Shown: positions 12,448 to 26,542 of the stretch, one piece after another
How positions within the stretch are numbered: position 1 is the stretch's first letter
How the letters are laid out: every line of letters begins with the position of its first letter
Origin: Zancudomyces culisetae HAW-14-8
Lineage: Eukaryota; Fungi; Kickxellomycota
Length of the DNA: 64,000 nucleotides
Assembly (NCBI GenBank): GCA_052426225.1
Contig: JBNJNM010000008.1
Span: 310,001 to 374,000 of the forward strand
Direction: 5' to 3'
Program-made: the position numbers and the translations under genes
The notes under the pieces: model-generated
What the model saw: only the letters and a program-made list of their open reading frames with translations
The model's database searches: none
Told to the model about the DNA's origin: nothing

Positions 12448-14049
12448 TTAATAGTATCCTGCAAATATCAACAGCAGAACCAATGCACCAAACCTGTTAC
12501 TTTTCATAAACGCTTTCCAACAGCTTTTTGGGGATGCCAAGTCCACATTTTTTATAGTCTCATACAGCATATATGGTCCTGCAGTAAACAGTCCCATGAA
12601 ATACATGCTCCCAAAGCTATTTTGGTAACCAGAATACCCCAACAACAATATCACAAAGGCCGAGAGTGTGTAAAGAATCGGCTTTGTATACCGATCTCCA
12701 AACAATAGCGCTGTTGATTTAACCCCTACCTTGATATCATCTAACTTGTCTTGGTGTGCGTAAATTGTATCGTACACAAGTGTCCAGAGAATTGTTGATG
12801 CATATAATGGTAATATGATACTTAGGTTGAAATTTCCGCCGCCAAATGCTATATCTCCGTTTGAAAGTATCGTAGTTATGCTTGTGCTAATTTTCTCTGC
12901 CAAATCATAAATGTTTCCATTAGTAAATAGTCCACTATTTAAAATCCCTTCATTAAGTGGTGGGGACACATCTACTGAAGTGGCTGCTGGTAGGGACAGG
13001 TTGGTTGCAACTGTTGTTGTATTTACTACTGCTGCAGGTGATGAAAGTGAAGGTGGATAGTTTCCTGAAATCATGGCCCAGCCCATAGGTATTCCATAAT
13101 TAAATGTTATTCCCAGAAACATTTGTGGCCAATATGTAATTCTCTTCATTAATGGATAGATCACTATGAGAGGTATGCTAAGAAAACCAAGTAATATACA
13201 AAATGGGTTCAGATGTATCAAAACGCCAAAAAACCCCGCGCTCATCATCACAGTTAGTAGCCCAAATGCCTGTAACCTTGTCGCTTCGCCACTAGCCAAC
13301 GGTCTAGAACTCCGCGTACGCTCCACATACTTGTCAAACTTTACATCACACATATCATTTATTATACATCCCGCTCCTCGCATTATTACTGCACCCACGG
13401 CGCACAATGCTGTGTATTTAAGCAGTACCACTGGCGTCAGCGATTGCAAAACTGTTGCAAGTTCTAAATTATACATCGTATATTCCGTTGTCAGTATCGT
13501 CGTTTGAAAGTAGTGGTAGGCATATGCTAGCGACCAGGAACATGGCCAAAAAAGAAGTGACGAGCCTATAGGCTTATCCATACGTGCCAGCCTGTAGTAC
13601 GGTCTTAATTTGACTAAAAACGTGCTTTCGTTTTGGGTTGCCACTTTTATACCTGCTACACCGCCTCCATTTTTCAATAAAACATCGCTGGTTGTTGCTT
13701 TATCGCTCTTTTTGTTTCCTGCTTTTCCACTTTTAAGATTGCTGGTAATTTCCCCATACGTCGTAGTATTTGAGATTGCCCTGCAGCTTTCCCGTTCGCT
13801 CACTCTCTTAAGCACTTTCGCTTCTGCCAGTTCTATTTTTTTGTGCAGCTTTCTTATACTATTACGAGATGCTCCATCCTCAAATCCACGTGGGTTGTGA
13901 AATGTAACCAAGACTGGTTTTGTAAAAAAAATTCTTTGATTTTCCGTCGAAAAGCTGTTGAAAAGATTGTTTTTTGTCAGGTTCAGCACGCTTTTGAACG
14001 CATGTGTGTTGTTTTTGAAAATTAGTCTACTTCCCGTGTGGCTAAACAT
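12448..14049 (-). CDS. COQ2: 4-hydroxybenzoate polyprenyltransferase, copy A (canonical UQ-type residues)
   Basis: UbiA motifs PYYRLARMDKPIGSSLLFWPC, MRGAGCIINDMCDVKFDKYVERT, YPLMKRITYWPQ..LGITFNYG and YDTIYAHQDKLDD..GVKSTAL. Basic/hydroxylated mitochondrial-type presequence. Confidence 0.95.
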   Translation of the reverse strand: MFSHTGSRLIFKNNTHAFKSVLNLTKNNLFNSFSTENQRIFFTKPVLVTFHNPRGFEDGASRNSIRKLHKKIELAEAKVLKRVSERESCRAISNTTTYGEITSNLKSGKAGNKKSDKATTSDVLLKNGGGVAGIKVATQNESTFLVKLRPYYRLARMDKPIGSSLLFWPCSWSLAYAYHYFQTTILTTEYTMYNLELATVLQSLTPVVLLKYTALCAVGAVIMRGAGCIINDMCDVKFDKYVERTRSSRPLASGEATRLQAFGLLTVMMSAGFFGVLIHLNPFCILLGFLSIPLIVIYPLMKRITYWPQMFLGITFNYGIPMGWAMISGNYPPSLSSPAAVVNTTTVATNLSLPAATSVDVSPPLNEGILNSGLFTNGNIYDLAEKISTSITTILSNGDIAFGGGNFNLSIILPLYASTILWTLVYDTIYAHQDKLDDIKVGVKSTALLFGDRYTKPILYTLSAFVILLLGYSGYQNSFGSMYFMGLFTAGPYMLYETIKNVDLASPKSCWKAFMKSNRFGALVLLLIFAGYY

Positions 14050-15877
14050 TGTTCATTCCACTCTGTTTGTTTGGGCTTCTTCCTATGTTTTGTATAAAGG
14101 CTTTATCCTGCTCTGCCTGCTTTTCTAACTTGTGAGTGGTAAAAAACTGTTGTTGTTGGCATTAATACTGTTATTATCTTTTAAAAATTAGTTTTACAAA
14201 AAAAAATGAATATTTATTATTAGTATGTATTTTATATAGGAAAGTGCTTTTTTTCTTGCTGATATACAAAAAGAAAATATCTAGTTGATATCTCCTAACT
14301 GCCTCTTTAAGGTTGGTCTTATCTTTGCCTATATATCTTTGTTCCTTTTTTTTTTGCTCACTCGATATGATTGATATCGGGTTTATTTATACCTTGATTT
14401 GGCAGACCAGGTCAATAAATAGATTCCACAAGCCAATTCTTGAATACGAAATTTCACATTTCGTTAATAAGCATTATCTTTTCCGATTTGGCTAAGCATT
14501 AAAATTTTTTTTCGTAGATTTTGCTTGGTGGATTAACCGAAAATTGTTGCTATAAAATGGCGGTTCAACTCTACAAGTCACAAAACAATAAGACCTTAAT
14601 TCTTGCCCCTTTTTTTTTTTTATTCCTCCTACGCTTTTTTTCGAAATTATAGTAGCAGGGTAAGGACAAAAAAAATTTTTTATACAATTTTTGAGGTTTA
14701 AAGTGCAATAGTATTTGTAACTTGTTTGCAGGTTTGTAACAAAATAAAATAATGGAAAGGGATAGGAGGAAGGAGCCTCGCATAACATTGTGGAAAATTG
14801 CGCATTGTTAGTGTGTAGCTTTGCGCCTGAGTGTGAGAGAATCAAAGATTTTGCTTTTACGATTTTTTTCAACTTTTTTTTTTTAAAACTCTTTGTATAT
14901 TTTTCAGATTTATAATATGGCATCTCGCTAGCATTGTAAAACTGGGGCTGTGTGCTGTTAATTATATGAATCGGTTCCGAGGTAGATATCTGATGATCGA
15001 TGGTACATAAATCCAAAATACTATTGGGTTTTCTGAGTACAATTCCAGATTCTTGTTTTTTAATGAATTCGTATATTAATTGAGTTGTTTTAATGTAATA
15101 CTATTTGCCCTTGGTACTGCTCATTCGTTGGTTTGTTTCATATGAAGGTTACCTTATTAAAATACTTCAACATGACGAGGATGCAAAGTCTAAAGCAAAT
15201 TCATTCCCGCACATTTGATATAACTCACCATTAAAAAAAAACAAGTTGGTAACTTGTATTAATACATGTCGGTCGTTTAAGCTGCAAAGTAGTCACGATA
15301 ACATTATGGCTTTTAAGCCAAAATCACCACAATACATTTAATCACAAGGGTGCGCCAACTTGCTCATCGCGTCATAATTAATGTGGTTTGTTCAAGTAAA
15401 TACATCCGCATTGGTGGTTCTTGTCATAAATCTAATAAGGCTCGCCATGCCACAAGATATAAATGATAATGTAGAGTGTGTTAATAGCGAACATACCTAT
15501 TATATGATTCCTATTCAATGACTTTGTGTCTCTTAAGATACCAGCACTGTTTTTTTATTCTTTAGTTTTCAAAGTTGTATATTATTAGGGGTGGTTTACT
15601 ATTTTGTTATAGATACAAAGTGCAATATATTCGAATATCGAATTTTCTGGATAGAACAAGTAAAAATCTTACTGAAATTAACTACAGAGCAATAGCAAGT
15701 CATAAGTGTGATGTACAAGTATGTCTCAATAATCTAGAGTTAATGAACCAAATGAAAAAAGAAGAAATTATATCATTTTCATACTTTTCATACAGTAGTG
15801 ATAACTAATTAAAAAAGCAGAAATATGGATATCAAATACTGCAAGATTCCGAAAAAAAAATGCAAACTGCAGGACAA

Positions 15878-15942
15878 GGTATTGGTATTGGTATTGGTAT
15901 TGGTATTGGTGTTGGTATTGGTGTTGGTGTTGGTGTTGGTGT
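15878..15942. repeat. Hexamer microsatellite (GGTATT)n/(GGTGTT)n
   Basis: About 10-11 directly visible tandem units in the COQ2-A/PHO81 divergent intergenic region. Confidence 0.9.
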
Positions 15943-16201
15943 AGGAGGACCTGAACTTTTCTTTTGTATGTTTGGAAACCTTCATTCATCATTTTCCCCA
16001 ATTCCTATCATACCTTTAGTTTTTATTGCGTTTTTACATGTGTTTCTTATTCAAAGTTCAAGTGTAATTGTACCTAGGATACATTGACAATGTTCGTATC
16101 AATGTAACAAACTTGTTATCACAACATTATCGAGAAATGTTGCTAACCAAAGTAACTCGATTTTGGTTAATCATCGTTTTTATTTTTATCTTTCAACAAA
16201 T

Positions 16202-17075
16202 AAACGTGCCTGGATCTTGTGTTTTGACTGGTCAATTAGATTTTTAGCAAAATAAGAGTAAAACACGGATCTAAGTATTTTTTTGCTCTTTTCCAAAAAC
16301 ACCAAAGGTGGTTACAACAACCCAGAAGCTGCGTATGGATGCGATCTAAACATATTAGGTGTAATAAAATCAACAATGCCTAACCCTAAAGGCTAATTAT
16401 ATATGCCCATCCCAAGGCATGCTAACACATACCGAATGAAAGTGCACGTTTGTTTTTGTTTATATCAGAATAAGCGTAAAGTGAAAGTCTCAAGTTTGAA
16501 AAGACAGCAAAAGGAAATTAATGTACATGTATGAGGTGAAAAGGGGAGGGGAGCATACATCAGAATATTCGGATGCAGGGGCTTCAAAAACTTCAGCACG
16601 TTTTTTTTTCGCACGTTTTTTTTGTATAAACCTATATTTTTATTATGTGCCATTATACCAAATGATATATTACTAGCATTTTCCTTATTCGCTGGTTTTT
16701 AATCCTTGGCTTAAGCTGAATATAAAAATCTGGCCAAGGAAATAAAACGTTTTTGATTATTTTTCTAATGGAAAATATTTAACTCCTAAAATCTACGAAA
16801 AGATGGTTAGCCAATTTTGCTCTAATAGGCATTTTCGTTGTTTATTACGAAAAAAATTTAAAATCTACGTAAAAAGAATATTTGGACTGTATATTCGAAT
16901 TTGTGAATAATAGAAAATTGTAGTATATTCCTAGGTTGTAGCCAAAGGGTAAGTGAAAAGGAACGACACGAATGATTGTTAGCTGGCCATATACCCCGAC
17001 CTTTTTTTTTTCACTCTGAGGTCCTAATTATTTTAGGTAAGTATAGGCAATAGCCGTCCTTTCGACCTAAACGTG
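16202..17075. promoter_or_regulatory. Cluster of five CACGTT E-boxes (Pho4/NUC-1-type, four as GCACGTTT) upstream of the PHO81-like gene
   Basis: CACGTT at 16445, 16597 and 16612; AACGTG at 16203 and 17070. They lie 0.3-1.15 kb upstream of the ATG at 17353. Confidence 0.6.
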
Positions 17076-17352
17076 TACTCACCATTTATTTTTATTCAAT
17101 ATACAGCCTAAATTGTACGTCATACTGAGTGTTAAAAAAAAGAGGGATAGAGGTATTAAGGGGATGTGTGTGTAGACGGACGCATATAGTAGTAAAATTT
17201 AGTTTGGAGTACTAACAACCGACTGCGAAATTTGATTAATATCAGCGAATTCATAAAGAATTATAGAAATTTACTGATTTTTTTTGTTTCTAATCTAACC
17301 CAAATATAAAATTCGACAAAGATTTGGTATCAGCAGTATCAAAAATCGAGAA

Positions 17353-20300
17353 ATGAAGGTAACTATCACATTAGCTAGTATATCAATATTTACAAATTCA
17401 GAGAACTGAGAAAAATAATGCTACAAAGAAAAAACGCGATTAATTAAAGTGGTGGGTAATGAATCAATATATAGTTCGGAAAACACATATTGACCCATCG
17501 ACAAGAAAGTTGGGAGGATCAGTACTTGGATTATAAAGCTTTAAAGAAACTAATAACCAAACTACTTGGCAAGGATCCCCAAGGTAAGTTTAATTTGTGT
17601 TGATATATTTCCACGAAAATGTTTATGATATTTGGGTCACTGGACAGTAACGTATAATATCTTTTTTGAAAAAAAAACAATTTTATAGGTGACTTATTAG
17701 CAGAAAGTGAAAGGACGGAGAAGCGAAAAGAGTTTTTTGCTAGACTAGAACAAGAGATAGAAAAGGTACGGGTTTGTTATACGATGGCTAGATAGAAATG
17801 CTTGGATATGTTCTTATGATAGAGAAGATTAAAAATGGGAGTTTATTCTAGTATACAATTTGGATGGATACAACGGATTTATAGGTAGGAAGCTTTTACC
17901 AATCAGAGGAGGAAAAACAGCATGCAAGGTATAAAGAGCTAAAAGAAACACAAATACTACTGCTGGAGAGAGAAAAAACCGAGGAATATGAGGGATGTAG
18001 AACTTATGTGGTACTATGTGGGATAGGTGAGGGTTGGGAGCAGCTAAACCATGAAGTAGACAATTTGGCAAGTTTTGCAGAACTAAACAGTACAGCAGTG
18101 CGGAAAATAGTAAAGAAATGGGACAAGCGCGCACAAAGTAGTTTTAAAGAAGTGTATTTAGAGCAACAACGGAAATACCAGGCGTGGTTCGATAGGAAAA
18201 AGATAACAGAGTTGAGTGACAACGTGTTGAAGGAGATAATTTCAACAGAGAACCTTGCACGAGCACTTGTAAACAAATCGTCGTGGGAATTATGGATGGA
18301 GCAAGCAATACAGAAGAATAATGAAGCTGAAATCACACGGCAGCTGTTTACAGGTGCGTTGATGGTGGAAAAGGGGAAAGAGGGGAAAGAACCATTCATT
18401 CAGTATATAAAAGGGATTAAAAGAATAGACAGCGAGTGGAAGGCAAAAATTAGCGGCCGAACATTAATCCATGCAGCAGCAAAGGTTGGAATTGTGGAGT
18501 TGGTTATTCTGTGTATAGAAAACAAGGTGGATGTTGAGGTAGTGGACAGATATGGAAAAAAGGCACTGTACTACGCAATATCCAATGGAAATAGTCAGAT
18601 AGTCAAACTAATTCTCGAAAATTTTGACAAGAATGAGTTAATGGTAGATTCACATGATACTCAGGCAGTTCAGTTTGCAGCATCTGAAGGTCAGCTCGAA
18701 TGTATGAGCGAAATATTAGAGTATTTGAAGCAGAGAGGGCTGCTAAACGAATCTATTCCAATTATGGAGAGGGCATTGTTTAAGAGCTGTGGACGTGGCA
18801 CGTGGGAGATCGCCAGATTATTGAGCCAGTACGGTTTGGAAGTAGAGAGTGCAGTTGAACTCAAGTCGGGGTTAACTGCCTTACACACCGCAGCAGCACA
18901 AGGGTGTCTTGAAATTATGGTTTGGCTGATTGAGCAAGGTGCGGATATTGACATCAAAGACAAAGATATGGGATGGACAGCGTTGTTTTATGCAGCAAAG
19001 AATGGGTATGGGGACTGCGTTGATTTGCTACTTACACATGGCGCAAACATCAATCAGACTGATGAACAAGGGAAGACTGCTGGCTTTTATGCTGCATATG
19101 AGGGCCACCATGCTATTTCTTGCAAACTAATACCTACTATTTCTGACTCTACGATGAGTTCAATGCAACTTGAAGATTTTATTCCGGATTTGGAGCTTCC
19201 ACCACCAGTTATTCCTTATTATCGTCGTGAATACAGTCAAAACCTACGTACAAAACAGCTAGTAGTACGCTTAAAAATCTTGGATAAGGGTAAAACACAA
19301 CCAATAAAATTTATAAATCACCTCAATCTGTCATCAATAAGAATCCAGGTGGGTTCGCTAGGGCAGGAGTCTCACACGTTTAAACTTCCGATTTTGAAAG
19401 ATCAATGCTGTGTAATTGATTTACTCACAGAATCGATTGATATCTCGATTTTTGCCACATTTGGAAACTATTTGATTGCTAACGGCACAATCACATCGGG
19501 TGTGTTTTCATCAACTGAAAAAGTTGAGAACTTTGTGGTGCTATTGACAAATAGCCTAAATGCTGTTGTTGCAGAGCTGAAGCTGTCGTTTTTGGTTATC
19601 AAACCGTTTGATCTTAGTGCTGTTCCCAACCTAAATTATTCGATAGCTACACCACCACCTGCTCCTTCTCATGATGAATTTGCATCCAAATATTTAAACA
19701 TCAAGGTACAGCTAACAAAGGATTTAGTTCCAGTTATTTATAAGGATGATCTTGTTTTAGTTAACGAATCCATTGGGCTGTACTTGCCCATTTGCGCCTT
19801 GACCTATTCCGAACTTTCAAAACTGCTAAGAAACGATCCTTCGGTATTTCCTAAATTTGGTTTCCTAAAAGCTGCATCTCAAGAGTTCACTACCACCAGA
19901 TACCTTTCTGAGCGATTGGCACTTGGGAGTTCTGGATATCCATTAGAAAAGGCACTTACTGAGATTGATGAAAGAATAGGCTTGAATATCGAGGTATATT
20001 CGGGTACATCGCATTCTGCTGATGAAACTATGACTTGTTGTTATGGAAACAAGAATTTAGCGGTTGATATGATTCTTAAAACACTGTTGCCGTTTTCTTG
20101 TTCTTCACAAGCGCTAATAGACGCTGGTGATCAGTTATTGGGCGAGAGGGGTCATCTGAGAAGGTCAATTTTTGTGAACTCAAAGGATGTTGACACAGTA
20201 TTAATGTTGTGTTCCAAACAGGCTATTTTCCCGGTGTTTTTAAGAGTGGATACGGAAACCATGTCGCTCAAAAGTGCAACAGAATTTGCGAGTCTTAACA

Positions 20301-20632
20301 GGATATTTGGACTGATTATTAGCTACCAGCAAATCCACGATTATTTCCAGCCAATAATCAATGCGGTGCGGAAAACATCTTCAGACTTGAAGATTTGTAT
20401 CAAAATGGATGATGAAAACGAAGATAAAAATGATGGAACGAGTCCATGTGATGTAGAAGATGTCTGTAGTGAGAGCGATAAAGACAACAGGACACAATTA
20501 GACTCAGGCCTTAGAAAACACAGAATGAATGGCGTTTTGAGCAGAGACAAGTGTTCCTGTTTGTGTAACAAAGTAGGCTTTGATTTAGGTGTGGATGTGA
20601 TCACATGTCACTTGATCACCAGAACATTTTGA
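17353..20632 (+). CDS. PHO81: SPX-ankyrin-degenerate GDPD protein, Pho81/NUC-2-like CDK inhibitor (4 exons; introns after MK, after ..DPQ and after ..EIEK)
   Basis: Spliced N-terminus MK|FGKHILTHRQESWEDQYLDYKALKKLI (SPX). ELNSTAVRKIVKKWDKR..SFKEVYL...ITELSD is NUC-2/Pho81-like. Ankyrin repeats (GLTALHTAAAQG, GWTALFYAAKNG) and IPDLELPPPVIP follow. The GDPD-like tail (VQLTKDLVPVIY) has no recognisable catalytic HRG motif, arguing against GDE1. Confidence 0.8.
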
Positions 20633-22015
20633 TTTCTTTTTTTCGTAAACTTTAATTAATAGAGCGGGTTTCATGATAGGCAAGGGGAGATAGGGAAACG
20701 GGGGGTTTTTTTTCTTCTTTTTGTTAGAGTAAATGAAAAATAAGGAATGTAAAGATCACTTGGTTGAGGGGATGGATACTCTAGGAATTTGCAAACTCCG
20801 GCTATTGAGGCTGTGAAAGATTGGATTGTTTGAATGTGGTAGTGGTGGTAGTGATGGTAAAAGCGGAAAACAAAAGAAAAAAAAACTAGAAAAAAAGAGT
20901 AGAAAATAGTAGAAAATAAAAAGTGGCATGATTTAAGGGAGGGGAAAAAAAGTATGGTACGATGTTTTTTTTTACTTTTGCAGTATATATTAGAGGTTTG
21001 AAATTAATGTTCATTGATAATTTCAATCGCTGAATCAGGAAAAAGGAAAATCGTATTGAAAAAGGCAAAAAATAGATGCAATAATATCGCTGTATCCCCA
21101 AGTATTACAAAAGAAAATAGGATAATGGGATAATGGGATTTTGGACATGTAAACGTTTCAAATAAAAGATGAGCATTAACATGGTGTTAATAATAGGATT
21201 TACGAGAAAAGTGGTAAATAGTCAACAACCCAGGAGGAGAAGAGACCATTGTATGTGCTACCCCTGGCTAAAACTGGGTTTGAATTTGTAAATAAAAGGG
21301 GATTTTGAAGAGTTTGTGTTCAGTTATTTAGGATAAGGAATGTGAAATGAGAAGAGTAGTTTTGATGGTTAAAAAAGAAAAATTTTGAACTGAATCAGTG
21401 TTACTATGTTGCTATATACTTTTAGTACAAAGCACAATTTGTTTGAAATGTTATTGATAGAAAATATGAAAATATAAAAATATATTTTGTTTGTAACTTG
21501 AATACAAGAGAAAAAAACAAGCCATTTTTAGTGCTTTTACCAAAAAATTAAAGATGGGATAATTGAAAATAAAGATTTACTTGTCAAATCAAAAATCGTT
21601 AATGTGTACACAACCATTTATGAAATAAACGAAAGGAAAAAAAAGTACCTGATTTTCGTTATTTTTTTTCTATTTTTTTTTTTTGTAAATTCTTATTGGG
21701 ATGAATAGCAGCAATTAGCGGAATAAAGAAATGCAAATAATAAAAAAAAGAATAAAGAAAAAACGCCAAAACACTGGCATTTCATTTGCCAGAAATAAAA
21801 AATGCAGCAAGACTCAAAAAATTAAAAGCGAAGGTTAATCGATTTCGAAATAATCTGAAGGATATATTTGCTATATTTACTTTTTCAGTTTCATGACATT
21901 GAAAAAAAAGTATATTACAAGAAATAGAATAAAGAAAAAGAAAGAGACGATATAAAGAGACAGAAAAGAAGCAGGATAGACACTTGTGAATATATACAGA
22001 TATACATATACACAA

Positions 22016-23818
22016 ATGCATAAATTTGGAACGTGGGGGGCAGTTCAGTTTGGCAGGCTATTGCACCAGCAACAGCAGAGCGGGGGGATAAATATAGTTT
22101 TGGCACACGGATATTCATCACTAGTTCAAAATAAAAGTAGTTGTAGTAGCCTTGCAAAGTTTGTACATATAAAGCCCATAAGAATAGAGTTTTTGGCAAG
22201 AGCAGTGGGTAATAGTGATAGCAGTAGTAGAAGTAATGCTTTGACAGGGGGTGGACAGGTGGCTGGAATATTTACAACAACAGATATTCTGAGTAAAAAA
22301 AAAATAAAACAAGGTCTCGCGTCAATGGATAAAGATAGAAACATCAGCAATAGTCGAGATAATGGAAGAAGTAATGGTTGTGGGCATGGGAATAGTGGTA
22401 TTGAAAAGATAGATCATAACAGTATCATAGAAGAAAGTAAAATTCTGATAACAGAACAGCTACAATTGTCAACATCTTCATCTCCAACTCCATCATCATC
22501 ACCACCACCGCCATCAGTACCGTCATCGTCATCGTCATCACCATCAACATCGACATCGACATCGACATCGTCATCACCATTACCACTACCACTACCAACA
22601 CCAACGAGCGGCAGTAGTATGGACAGTGGAAATGGGAATAATAAAGGTAATAATGGCTTGGTTGCGAAACTGCGGCCATACTACCTGCTAGCACGAATGG
22701 ACCGACCAATTGGATCACTACTACTGTTTTGGCCCAGTGCGTGGGCACTAACATTTTCATACCTACACTTCAGCACACTGGCGGCGAGCACAGCAACTAC
22801 AACGGCGGCAGGTGTGGCAGCCACGACAGCAACAGCACTTGTGTTAACACCGGGGGTGTACTTGCATTACATGGCGATATTTTTAGCAGGATCTGTACTG
22901 ATGCGCAGTGCAGCGTGTATAGTGAACGATATGCTGGACGTCAAGTACGATCGGCAGGTAGCACGCACGCGGTTTAGCCGACCGCTGGCAAATGGCACAG
23001 TGACGCGCATGCAGGCAGTTGAGTTGCTGGCGGTAGTGCTGAGTGCGGGATTTTTGGTGCTTGTACAACTTAATAACTTTTCGGTGCTTTTGGGGATGTG
23101 TTGTTTGCCTTTAGTGGTGATATACCCACTTATGAAGCGGATTACGCACTTACCACAGGTATTTTTGGGACTGACGTTGAATTATGGCGTGTTGATTGGG
23201 TGGAGTGCAATTTCGGGTAATTATCCGCCACTTTCATCGCTAGCAAACGAGTCGTGGATTAGCAAGACAAGTTCAAGCGAGAATTTAATTGGAAATGTAG
23301 TTAATAGTGGTACTAATGTTATTAGCAGTAGTGGTAGCGGTAGTGGGGTATATGATATCATGGAGCGATTAACGACATCAGTATCTACAATATTTTCAAA
23401 CGGAGACATTGCATTTGGGGGTAGCAATTTCGATCTCAGTATTGTACTCCCGCTATATACAGCGACTATTTTATGGACAGTTATGTACGATACTATTTAC
23501 GCCCACCAGGACAAGGTTGATGATGCACGGATAGGCGTTAAATCCACCGCATTGCTGTTTGGAGACCGGTTTACCAAACCCGTACTGTATACATGTGCCG
23601 CTCTAACGATTGCATTATTGGTGTATGCTGGGTACCGCAATGGGTTCGCTGGTCCGCTGTACTATGGTGGCCTGTTGACGGCGGGTACGTATACATTGAT
23701 GGAGAGTATTTACAAATTGAACCTTAATGATCCAAAGAGTTGTTGGCGTGCTTATTCCAAGAGCAATAGATTTGGGTTGTTGGTTTTGTTATTGATATTT
23801 ACTGGTAACTTGGTATAA
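22016..23818 (+). CDS. COQ2: 4-hydroxybenzoate polyprenyltransferase, copy B (divergent paralog)
   Basis: PYYLLARMDRPIGSLLLFWPS, MRSAACIVNDMLDVKYD, YPLMKRITHLPQVFLGLTLNYG and YDTIYAHQDKVDD..GVKSTAL. First in-frame ATG at 22016 (the ORF track starts at an upstream GTG). Long S/P/T-rich N-terminal extension. Confidence 0.93.
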   Translation: MHKFGTWGAVQFGRLLHQQQQSGGINIVLAHGYSSLVQNKSSCSSLAKFVHIKPIRIEFLARAVGNSDSSSRSNALTGGGQVAGIFTTTDILSKKKIKQGLASMDKDRNISNSRDNGRSNGCGHGNSGIEKIDHNSIIEESKILITEQLQLSTSSSPTPSSSPPPPSVPSSSSSSPSTSTSTSTSSSPLPLPLPTPTSGSSMDSGNGNNKGNNGLVAKLRPYYLLARMDRPIGSLLLFWPSAWALTFSYLHFSTLAASTATTTAAGVAATTATALVLTPGVYLHYMAIFLAGSVLMRSAACIVNDMLDVKYDRQVARTRFSRPLANGTVTRMQAVELLAVVLSAGFLVLVQLNNFSVLLGMCCLPLVVIYPLMKRITHLPQVFLGLTLNYGVLIGWSAISGNYPPLSSLANESWISKTSSSENLIGNVVNSGTNVISSSGSGSGVYDIMERLTTSVSTIFSNGDIAFGGSNFDLSIVLPLYTATILWTVMYDTIYAHQDKVDDARIGVKSTALLFGDRFTKPVLYTCAALTIALLVYAGYRNGFAGPLYYGGLLTAGTYTLMESIYKLNLNDPKSCWRAYSKSNRFGLLVLLLIFTGNLV

Positions 23819-24037: not shown

Positions 24038-26542
24038 TCAAGAAATAGTATATACCAAAATATACGCGGTTTTATCGATTTTTTCTGCTTTGACTTGGTC
24101 AATATTTCCAATGTGAGAAAGTTTTGTATCATCAAACATCAACCATTGAGATACAGCCTGAGTTACCATTTGTCCACTGCTACTATTGTTAGTACCAAAA
24201 GCGACATTTTTCACGTTGCGTTTCCATTTGATATCACAAGTATAATGACCACCATTGGTATTATCACCATGATGGTAAATAACAGATTCAAGATTATAAG
24301 TAGTGGGTTTGAGCTTGGGTTTGGGTTTGGGTTTGGATGTAGATGTAGATGTGGGTGTGGGTGTGGGTGTGGGTTTGAGTTTGAGTTTGAGTTTGGATTT
24401 ATCGTCTTTTTTGATCTTGTTAATATTGGTACTGGTATTTGATGATGATGGATGGAACCATTTATCTTTAATTACGAGTGTTTCAGGGTACTTGATATAC
24501 TTGTTGATTTTCTTGATTAGTCCATCATGAATGCTATATTCAACCCGTTTAAGTATAATAATTAGAACTGGAGGAAGTGATTCGATATACATTTGTTTTG
24601 TAGCCTTGACAAATCTACCACTAGTATTAGTATTAGTATTAGTATTAGTATTAGTGTTGGAATTGGAATGTGAATAAATTTCATTATCGTTATCCATTGC
24701 AAATGTAGAATTTTGTTGATGAGGTGCAAGGTAATAATCTTCAATGACTTCGGGGAATAAGAGATTTTCAATAGCATCCTCAATTGTGTTAATATCAGCA
24801 GTGGCATTGATCTGGCCATTTTCAACGCTATTATTCGCCAAAGTGGCGGAATTGTTAATCCGATGATTATTTACTATATCCAGAGCTAAATACTCAAATG
24901 GTTCAAAAGTACAACTGGGTTTTTGCCCTGGAATCTTGAGTTCTGATCGCAAAACTCCCTGGAAAATCTTGGTAATTGGTGTCTTGACCAAATTCAAATT
25001 ATTCAGATTTTCACTAGTTACCATCATTGCCTGAAAATTATCTTGAAATTGTGATTGTGATTGTGATTGTGATTCACCATTCCCTACAGTACTAGCTGCT
25101 GATTCCGATTGCTGTACCTGTCGTTTGCTAACTATATTTTTCAGTACTTTTTTCTTGGTTTTGGATAACTTGACGTTCCAATTAGGTTCGTTTCCTTCAA
25201 CCATTCCATTTTCACTATCTTTAATATCAAGAAAATGATATTTACTCCTTATTGCTGTAATAAATTCTTCATTCATATATTGCAAGAAATGACCCATAAA
25301 TTCTACCGCATCTTCTTGTTGATACTGCGTTGATTGTTGTTGAGTTGATATATTCCAACTTTTCTTCTTTGTACTACCTGTTGTTCCAGACCCAAAACCA
25401 TCACCTCCACCAACATTTATATCGTAATATTCCAATCCACTTGTAAAAGAATAATCTTGTCGTTTATTTCGTTTCTTTTTTATTACATCATAAAGATACT
25501 CTGGCATAAATGGTGTATTGGATTCATTTAATTCCTTGACAATCTCCCGTGCAATCTCACTCGAAACAATTATTTGAGAACCACCACTGCTATTGCTATT
25601 GCTATTGCCATCATTATTATTACTTTCTAGGTTATTATCCGATGGTTCAGCTATAGAATGGTAATAACAGGCAGTTTCTTTATTAGTCACGTCAAATTCA
25701 CTAATAAACATTAGTAGGGCCTCTAACAATTCGTACTTTTCATAATCACGCAAACTAAATTTGACTGTGGATTTGAGTTGCATCATCATTGATAAGAAAT
25801 AAGCGTTATGTAAGAGTGCTTGTAATACTACGTTCATAAAACAAGTGTTGCCAATATTGACTAGGCCTCTTGGATTGCTTATTGTATATGAACAAGAATT
25901 TCCAACTCCTCCTTTATCTATATTTGTATTGTTGGTTGAAGTAAAAGAGTGTTCGATAGAGTAGAAATCTATAAAGTCGGCCAAATCTATATTTCTATTG
26001 GCACCAACACTAGCACTACCAATTCCAACTACAGCATCGCCATTTTCATTTTCATTTTCATTGTCATTGTCATTATTATCGTTGTTGTTATTGTCAGTTC
26101 CAATACATCCAGAAGCTTGCAAATGTTGTTGTACAAGTCTTTGTCTATGTAGCTGGGCATTGGGGTCGTTATCAGTGGCAAGGGTATTTATATTTGGATT
26201 TTTATTTTTATTTTTTGAAAATAAAGAAGCCCAAGAAGATGGTTTTTCACTTTTAAAAGTAGATTCAGTTGTATTAGTAGTAGTAGTGTTTGTTGTTGAT
26301 GCTGTTGATGATGCAGAATTATTTAGTGGTTTTGATTTGGATTTTGATTTTGATTTGAATTTAACTTTAGCTTTAGCCTTTTGATCTTGGAATTTCCAGT
26401 ATTCTAATGTATCAGTTTGGTTTGGAATATAAATGGGATAAGCATCGAGTAGTAGAGCTTGGAGAGTTGTATGGTCGTTGAGGATTTGAGAACGTTGGAT
26501 TACACGTTCGGATTGAAAAGGGTTTAAATCCTTTTTCGTCAT
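24038..26542 (-). CDS. UBP3: Ubiquitin-specific protease, Ubp3/USP10-like
   Basis: Cys box PRGLVNIGNTCFMNVVLQALL, QQEDAVEFMGHFL, His box YNLESVIYHHG..NGGHYTCD, WLMFDD and TAYILVY. N-terminal KPSSWASLF motif. Confidence 0.85.
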   Translation of the reverse strand: MTKKDLNPFQSERVIQRSQILNDHTTLQALLLDAYPIYIPNQTDTLEYWKFQDQKAKAKVKFKSKSKSKSKPLNNSASSTASTTNTTTTNTTESTFKSEKPSSWASLFSKNKNKNPNINTLATDNDPNAQLHRQRLVQQHLQASGCIGTDNNNNDNNDNDNENENENGDAVVGIGSASVGANRNIDLADFIDFYSIEHSFTSTNNTNIDKGGVGNSCSYTISNPRGLVNIGNTCFMNVVLQALLHNAYFLSMMMQLKSTVKFSLRDYEKYELLEALLMFISEFDVTNKETACYYHSIAEPSDNNLESNNNDGNSNSNSSGGSQIIVSSEIAREIVKELNESNTPFMPEYLYDVIKKKRNKRQDYSFTSGLEYYDINVGGGDGFGSGTTGSTKKKSWNISTQQQSTQYQQEDAVEFMGHFLQYMNEEFITAIRSKYHFLDIKDSENGMVEGNEPNWNVKLSKTKKKVLKNIVSKRQVQQSESAASTVGNGESQSQSQSQFQDNFQAMMVTSENLNNLNLVKTPITKIFQGVLRSELKIPGQKPSCTFEPFEYLALDIVNNHRINNSATLANNSVENGQINATADINTIEDAIENLLFPEVIEDYYLAPHQQNSTFAMDNDNEIYSHSNSNTNTNTNTNTNTSGRFVKATKQMYIESLPPVLIIILKRVEYSIHDGLIKKINKYIKYPETLVIKDKWFHPSSSNTSTNINKIKKDDKSKLKLKLKPTPTPTPTSTSTSKPKPKPKLKPTTYNLESVIYHHGDNTNGGHYTCDIKWKRNVKNVAFGTNNSSSGQMVTQAVSQWLMFDDTKLSHIGNIDQVKAEKIDKTAYILVYTIS

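Follow-up and report, generated by a model that had tools for sequence, protein, structure and literature searches.

An old duplicate COQ2 pair in Zancudomyces culisetae, one copy of which partly resembles the animal COQ-2e form

The window analyzed here, a stretch of 64,000 nucleotides from the genome assembly of Zancudomyces culisetae HAW-14-8 (GCA_052426225.1, contig JBNJNM010000008.1, positions 310,001 to 374,000 of the forward strand), contains two copies of COQ2, which diverge from each other on either side of a PHO81-like gene. In copy A the ring-pocket residues are the usual pair, a phenylalanine and an alanine, whereas copy B carries a leucine in place of the phenylalanine, as do the COQ-2e forms that direct some animals from ubiquinone (UQ) toward rhodoquinone (RQ). 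A first-pass annotation of this DNA had read the pair as a possible duplication-based UQ/RQ switch. The pair is real and unusual, and the two copies are old sisters that have both been held under purifying selection; we argue below, with moderate confidence, that both belong to the UQ pathway. The features on which the argument draws are the following, with residue positions relative to the Leu of the first pocket helix given as 0, +4, +6, and +7.

12448-14049, minus strand: COQ2 copy A, 533 residues, with an ATG start and a conventional Phe/Ala pocket
13102-13104, minus strand: codon TTT for Phe316 of copy A, equivalent to Caenorhabditis elegans Phe204, in the context GITFNYG
13366-13383, minus strand: MRGAGC motif of copy A, just upstream of the first Asp-rich motif
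18008-20632, plus strand: main open reading frame of the PHO81-like SPX-ankyrin gene between both COQ2 copies, with Pfam ankyrin repeats and the C-terminal end of an SPX domain
21986-23818, plus strand: COQ2 copy B, an open frame of 610 residues that opens, as listed, at GTG
22901-22918, plus strand: MRSAAC in copy B, with the second Gly of the motif changed to Ala at residue 310
23177-23179, plus strand: codon TTG for Leu398 of copy B, in the context GLTLNYG
23177-23197, plus strand: first pocket helix of copy B, with Leu398, Val402, and Ile404 COQ-2e-like at 0, +4, and +6, and Gly remaining at +7
23215-23445, plus strand: insertion of about 70 residues between the two pocket helices of copy B, common to copy A
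23447-23512, plus strand: second pocket helix of copy B together with its second Asp-rich motif, Thr492 and Val499 being e-like
23501-23503, plus strand: codon for Ala506 of copy B, the UQ-type state where COQ-2e carries Ser243

Both COQ2 genes are intact and intronless, as the first-pass annotation had described them: the two open frames and the SPX-ankyrin frame between them are all present, and end-to-end alignment of each copy with its homologs requires no intron. The first ATG of copy B, at 22016, is its probable start, and the SPX domain of the PHO81-like gene begins upstream of the frame listed above. Copies A and B lie about 8 kb apart and are separate genes, not mutually exclusive splice forms of a single one. 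Both match Pfam UbiA (PF01040; E = 1.3e-46 for copy A and 1.7e-45 for copy B), and both exceed the curated cut-off of 275.45 bits for the NCBIfam 4-hydroxybenzoate polyprenyltransferase equivalog TIGR01474, with scores of 290.4 and 277.4 bits, respectively. The first Asp-rich motif (NDxxDxxxD) reads NDMCDVKFD in copy A and NDMLDVKYD in copy B, and the second, YDTIYAHQDK followed by xDD, is kept in both. Intact frames, UbiA matches, TIGR01474 scores, and preserved Asp-rich motifs together support both genes being working COQ2, and both products are probably catalytically active. Their N-termini are basic and acid-poor, as in mitochondrial presequences (in the first 40 residues, five Lys/Arg and one Asp/Glu in copy A, and three Lys/Arg and no Asp/Glu in copy B), and both proteins are likely to be mitochondrial. 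Over the N-terminal 140-220 residues, the two copies share just 16% identity. The genome comprises 27.1 Mb in 25 contigs; apart from COX10, no further UbiA-type gene was found in it, and we therefore count exactly two COQ2 genes in this fungus.

Over 397 residues, copies A and B are 56% identical. In the maximum-likelihood tree they are sisters with a support of 100/100 on a long stem of 1.81, and the branch lengths after the duplication are 1.03 for copy B and 0.62 for copy A. Between the copies, synonymous divergence (dS) is saturated and nonsynonymous divergence (dN) is 0.39, which gives an omega of about 0.2 across the domain; with dS saturated, this omega is only a rough upper-level estimate. 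These values indicate an ancient duplication, with purifying selection acting on both copies since. Neutral evolution of copy B, an outcome that the first-pass annotation had named as telling against its proposal, appears unlikely.

The two copies are also similarly altered at otherwise conserved positions. Among 96 columns that are at least 90% conserved, copy A departs at 15 and copy B at 16, so that copy A is no pristine UQ enzyme. At one column, copy A replaces a Phe that all 231 other sequences share, and the near-invariant residues altered in copy B comprise Gly310Ala, Ser373Cys, Trp389Leu, and Phe590Tyr. The column of Ala310 is 98.7% Gly; in an alignment of 146 rows, Ala stands there in 6, one of which is copy B. 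The whole lineage is fast-evolving. Around the altered Trp, at residues 389-395 (23150-23170), the sequence of copy B is THLPQVFLG, whereas the eukaryotic COQ2 pattern is T(Y/F)WPQ..LG, in which the Trp is 95% conserved; THLPQVFLG is the norm in a set of metagenomic bacterial-type UbiA genes (loci L024-L038).

The insertion shared by the two copies lies between the NYG-containing helix and the YDTIYAHQD helix. It lengthens the spacing between the Phe site and the Ala site from the usual 39 residues, a distance that the first-pass annotation had taken from human COQ2 and that holds in most COQ2 sequences, to 115 residues in copy A and 108 in copy B. A Thr/Ala-rich segment is likewise present in both copies; it lies in the first loop, flanked by the FWP..W helix and the MRGAGC motif. 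Low-complexity runs of Asn, Ser, Thr, and Gly-Ser abound in the coding regions of the window, as in a UBP-like open reading frame at 24038-26542 and in the N-terminal half of copy B, and the GC skew of the window switches sign in blocks of several kilobases.

The CRM1 protein encoded in the window is 59% identical to that of Furculomyces boomerangus, 53-57% identical to those of four Smittium species, and about 50% identical to those of Kickxellales and all else. Because these identities are highest to Furculomyces and Smittium, the fungus belongs to Kickxellomycotina and stands nearest Harpellales. The COQ2 tree agrees with this placement: the pair adjoins Smittium megazygosporum COQ2, which is the sister protein, although this join carries a warning of long-branch attraction. 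On the S. megazygosporum contig, neither PHO81 nor a second UbiA gene was found within reach of COQ2. Searches for closer homologs, covering 5.8 billion proteins, 50%-identity representatives (searched exhaustively), and a scan of metagenomes, returned none above about 49% identity, and no record of the exact copy A protein was found. The top match of the protein search, Tanacetum P0001, is not a relative: it is a plant gene model in which two COQ2 copies in tandem have been joined into one. The closest real match, the metagenomic P0353 (490 residues), is of the Phe/Ala type; its first loop carries a comparable poly-Thr/Ala run, but it lacks the insertion of about 70 residues.

In animals, all COQ-2e exons change Phe204 to Leu and Ala243 to Ser, and both residues lie beside the substrates (PMC7434440), which confirms the two marks that the first-pass annotation had named. 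Its reading of the DNA at this site was likewise exact, with the TTT and TTG codons, the change from MRGAGC to MRSAAC, and the YDTIYAHQD motif of both copies all seen in the sequence and its translations. We aligned both copies with real a- and e-forms from nematodes, molluscs, and flatworms. The nematode and mollusc e-forms read TLNWGVLIAW...YDTIYS; their Leu aligns with Leu398 of copy B and their Ser with its Ala506. Copy B thus has one of the two diagnostic states and copy A neither, and the alignment upholds the claim that copy B carries the Phe-to-Leu switch without the Ala-to-Ser one.

We then asked how often this combination occurs elsewhere. Among 232 COQ2 sequences gathered in two word-index searches, the residues at the two sites are Phe/Ala in 205, Leu/Ser in 10 (the e-forms), Ile/Ala in 5, Met/Ala in 2, and Leu/Ala in 2. 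Cluster names place Leu/Ser sequences in a nematode, Aplysia, and Macrostomum; the two Leu/Ala sequences of the 232 are copy B and the COQ2 of Delphinus delphis. The dolphin protein (isoform X1, P0211) is a mammalian single-copy COQ2 annotated with LTLNWG, that is, with Leu at the 204 site, and with Ala at the 243 site. Phe is found in all 16 of the named fungal COQ2 sequences sampled and in all 36 of the COQ2/UbiA genes from metagenome loci that are readable at the Phe204 site. The 146 representatives clustered at 50% identity are more varied, with Phe in 114, Ile in 11, Met in 10, and Leu in 7 (about 20% Ile, Met, or Leu). Leu combined with Ala was also seen in one Logan sequence and in a marine plankton cluster with 41 members. 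A snail sequence with Leu and Ala (P0412) was not counted as a free-standing case, since it comes from an RQ lineage and its gene model probably merges both exons. On this census, Leu at the Phe204 site is rare, absent from the sampled fungi, and not exclusive to RQ makers, and aliphatic residues are tolerated there. The view of Phe as a fixed UQ-type residue, implicit in the first-pass annotation, thus holds across the named fungi but is looser than claimed once the Ile, Met, and Leu of the 50%-identity representatives are considered.

The resemblance of copy B to the e-forms extends beyond this one residue. In the segment equivalent to the animal a/e exon, 16 columns discriminate the e-forms: their e-form consensus is shared neither by the a-forms of the animal lineages concerned nor by the general consensus. 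Copy B matches the e-state at 6 of these columns and copy A at 1. For comparison, bona fide e-forms match at 5-13 columns (Aplysia 6, Macrostomum 5), and none of the 299 COQ2 sequences from lineages without known RQ matches at more than 4. The e-like states of copy B comprise Leu398, the Val at +4, and the Ile at +6 in helix 1, together with Thr492 and Val499 in helix 2. Three of the six well-conserved e-form states are among them (Leu, Val at +4, and Ile at +6), and several of the matched states are just moderately conserved among the e-forms themselves. The e-form Ala at +7 is missing from copy B, which keeps Gly, and Met replaces Ile before YDTIY. In helix 2, the copy B stretch LPLYTATILWTVMYDTIYA matches the Caenorhabditis e-form stretch LPLYTATILHTVIYDTIYS at 16 of 19 residues.

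With the pre-specified Phe204 column left out, copy B still matches at 5 of 15 columns, for which the column frequencies give P = 4e-4. When the test is conditioned on the departures of copy B from the consensus, using the substitution spectrum of the other sequences and again excluding the Phe204 column, P rises to 0.013. An initial position-specific scoring matrix had unequal pseudocount floors that favored any divergent sequence and was replaced by balanced pseudocounts, state counts against a larger null, and the divergence-conditioned test. Across these successively stricter tests the e-like signal falls from a z of about 6 to a P of about 0.01 and is still present. The case for Val at +4, Ile at +6, and Ala at +7 as independent RQ markers is weakened, since bacterial and alphaproteobacterial-type UbiA proteins that keep the Phe vary at these positions.

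The genome offers further context. The kynurenine-pathway genes that the first-pass annotation had proposed to look for are present, namely three IDO genes, KMO, and kynureninase, and so is the downstream 3-HAO. Their presence is permissive only: the kynurenine pathway is a common fungal route to NAD. The three IDO-family genes (C12:2209424-2210920, C10:369136-370692, and C23:793045-794151; two strong matches and one weaker) outnumber the downstream kynureninase, KMO, and 3-HAO genes, of which there is one each. Complex II was compared by gene copy number, since the published texts provide no mappable position for the SdhC and ETFDH pocket residues that might serve as RQ markers. SDHA, SDHC, and SDHD are each single-copy, and no second isoform of the quinone-binding subunits was found; in worms that use RQ, by contrast, subunits of complex II are reported to be duplicated or specific to RQ (bioRxiv 10.64898/2026.04.08.717022). 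A soluble fumarate-reductase-type gene is also present and is predicted to provide a quinone-independent route of fumarate reduction. As for rquA, the 8 of 14 Methyltransf_11 matches that were scanned against NCBIfam, in which the presence of an RquA model is unconfirmed, gave only UbiE/COQ5, UbiG/COQ3-like, cyclopropane-fatty-acid (CFA) synthase, and BioC-like assignments. A search for AOX likewise gave no match, a negative that carries little information.

Two pairs of 3.2-kb stretches on contigs C6 and C12 (loci L057/L058 and L065/L066) are inverted with respect to each other and 99.4% and 100% identical. A COQ5/UbiE exon lies in one pair, and a CFA-synthase-like gene in the other. The stretches lie about 263-276 kb apart within each contig, in collinear order, which suggests either a recent inverted duplication of very large size or a retained haplotig.

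The explanation that we favor, and to which we give about equal chances of being right or wrong, is that both genes are UQ-pathway COQ2 kept by sub-functionalization, with the pocket changes of copy B being conservative and partly compensatory. In this scheme, the insertion of about 70 residues in the catalytic loop would have been gained first, in a fungal lineage that is close to Harpellales and evolves fast. A local duplication in inverted orientation, itself old, would then have produced two mitochondrial 4-hydroxybenzoate-type polyprenyltransferases, both retained by purifying selection. Copy A would have preserved the conventional aromatic pocket, and copy B, evolving about 1.7 times faster, would have acquired conservative hydrophobic or beta-branched replacements in its pocket helices, including the Phe-to-Leu change. 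Both copies would supply UQ synthesis, with no true UQ/RQ switch. The reason for keeping both, we infer, may lie in their differing N-terminal regions, in regulation or life stage, or in a modestly wider tolerance of ring precursors in copy B.

Several observations count for this UQ-pathway reading. Ser243 was not acquired, and Leu, Ile, or Met is found together with Ala in other COQ2 proteins. The two copies depart about equally from conserved columns, SDHA, SDHC, and SDHD are single-copy, and the positions +4, +6, and +7 already vary in bacterial-type UbiA proteins that keep the Phe. Three considerations weigh on the other side. Copy B is the sole sequence among the approximately 300 COQ2 from lineages without known RQ that falls within the e-form range, the pattern of its matches suggests a directional remodeling of the ring pocket and not plain drift, and it is unusual in its own right that two COQ2 genes have been kept over such a time.

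These points lead to the alternative that copy B is an alternative-substrate COQ2, with a pocket favoring an arylamine, either 3-hydroxyanthranilate from the kynurenine pathway or p-aminobenzoate (pABA). We take this rival seriously but regard it as less likely than not. Leu398 does stand in the Leu204 column of the real e-forms, where all the named fungi sampled have Phe; it is accompanied by the other two well-conserved helix-1 states, by the Thr and Val of helix 2, and by the close helix-2 match, which together set copy B apart from the 299 comparison sequences. The complete set of kynurenine genes could furnish the substrate, and the nearest named relatives by CRM1 are gut fungi of the Harpellales. 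Against this, neither Ser243 nor the Ala at +7 was acquired, and in C. elegans sufficiency has been demonstrated only for F204L and A243S in combination, single edits being untested there (PMC8659336). Leu with Ala is known from the dolphin protein and two sequence clusters, and about a fifth of the representatives have Ile, Met, or Leu at the site. The kynurenine genes form the usual NAD route of fungi, complex II lacks a second isoform of its quinone-binding subunits, and the soluble fumarate reductase would already provide a route independent of quinones.

That RQ is an actual product of this fungus is a narrower claim, and an improbable one. Equally doubtful is the full scenario of an arthropod-gut fungus whose second COQ2, arising by duplication and converging on COQ-2e, prenylates a kynurenine-derived arylamine to yield RQ or a related aminoquinone. 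The hypoxic gut niche invoked by the first-pass annotation is made plausible by the CRM1 relationships, but gut life is not thereby proven. Its central proposal, a split into UQ and RQ enzymes by duplication, has gained from the match to the Leu204 column, the additional e-like states, and the kynurenine genes, and has lost from the absence of Ser243 and the single-copy complex II. Least probable is that copy B is a redundant duplicate heading for loss, unexpressed or neutral, with its Leu as relaxed-constraint noise from G-biased mutation: its longer branch, its several altered near-invariant residues, a TIGR01474 score barely above the cut-off, and the use of TTG, its commonest Leu codon, in a region of positive GC skew would all fit such decay, but a frame of 610 codons has stayed open despite saturated dS, the domain as a whole shows an omega of about 0.2, neither catalytic Asp-rich motif is disrupted, and copy A departs just as often from conserved columns, including one that is 100% Phe elsewhere.

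The distinction matters because in animals the choice of COQ2 between 4-hydroxybenzoate and an arylamine decides between UQ and RQ, and it is an anthelmintic target. Were the RQ scenario true, this would be the first COQ2-based RQ route outside animals, a counterpart, achieved by gene duplication, to the coq-2a/e splice switch of animals that would be useful in a low-oxygen arthropod gut, and a natural experiment in which Leu204 and its helix partners act without Ser243. Since copy B combines Leu and e-like helix states without the Ser, on a background that it shares with copy A, the pair is in any case a ready reagent for separating the contributions of these residues. Should copy B accept arylamines, a fungal lineage would come within the range of anaerobic quinone metabolism through a previously unseen route; should it refuse them, Leu204 would be compatible with ordinary UQ synthesis, which bears on the use of Leu as a genomic RQ marker.

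The closest parallel among known systems is the animal COQ-2a/COQ-2e pair, which is encoded by the mutually exclusive exons 6a and 6e of coq-2 in nematodes, flatworms, molluscs, and annelids. In both cases, two versions of one prenyltransferase differ in two ring-pocket helices. Copy B resembles COQ-2e in its Leu at the Phe204 site, its Val at +4 and Ile at +6, and its closely similar helix 2, and the kynurenine route to 3-hydroxyanthranilate is present as well. The fungal system differs in consisting of two genes instead of two exons, in lacking Ser243 and the Ala at +7, in having the segment split by the insertion of about 70 residues, and in the absence of RQ-type complex II isoforms.

Canonical fungal Coq2, exemplified by S. 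megazygosporum P0039, is a single-copy 4-hydroxybenzoate/pABA polyprenyltransferase. The present pair shares with it the family and the Asp-rich motifs and, in copy A, the Phe/Ala pocket. It differs in copy number, with two genes here and a single Smittium COQ2 in the match list (copy number elsewhere in fungi being unsurveyed), in the long N-terminal extensions of both copies, and in an identity of only about 45% to other fungal COQ2. The loop insertion of both copies is not found in Smittium COQ2, and the Leu of copy B contrasts with the Phe of all the named fungi sampled.

A different path to the same end product in a low-oxygen eukaryote would be the RquA route of bacteria and microbial eukaryotes. 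RquA aminates finished ubiquinone, so that no change in COQ2 is needed. This route has been predicted in the chytrid Quaeritorhiza haematococci, so RQ itself has already been predicted for a fungus (bioRxiv 10.64898/2026.04.08.717022). A more remote comparison is offered by the UbiA of Aeropyrum pernix (PDB: 4OD4 and 4OD5), a distant archaeal homolog of the same fold family (E = 4.9e-10), which in the phmmer alignment has Leu at the position equivalent to Phe204 and Ser at that equivalent to Ala243. Set against these systems, the new finding here is an old duplicate COQ2 pair with a large loop insertion, one copy of which has partly converged on the animal e-form.

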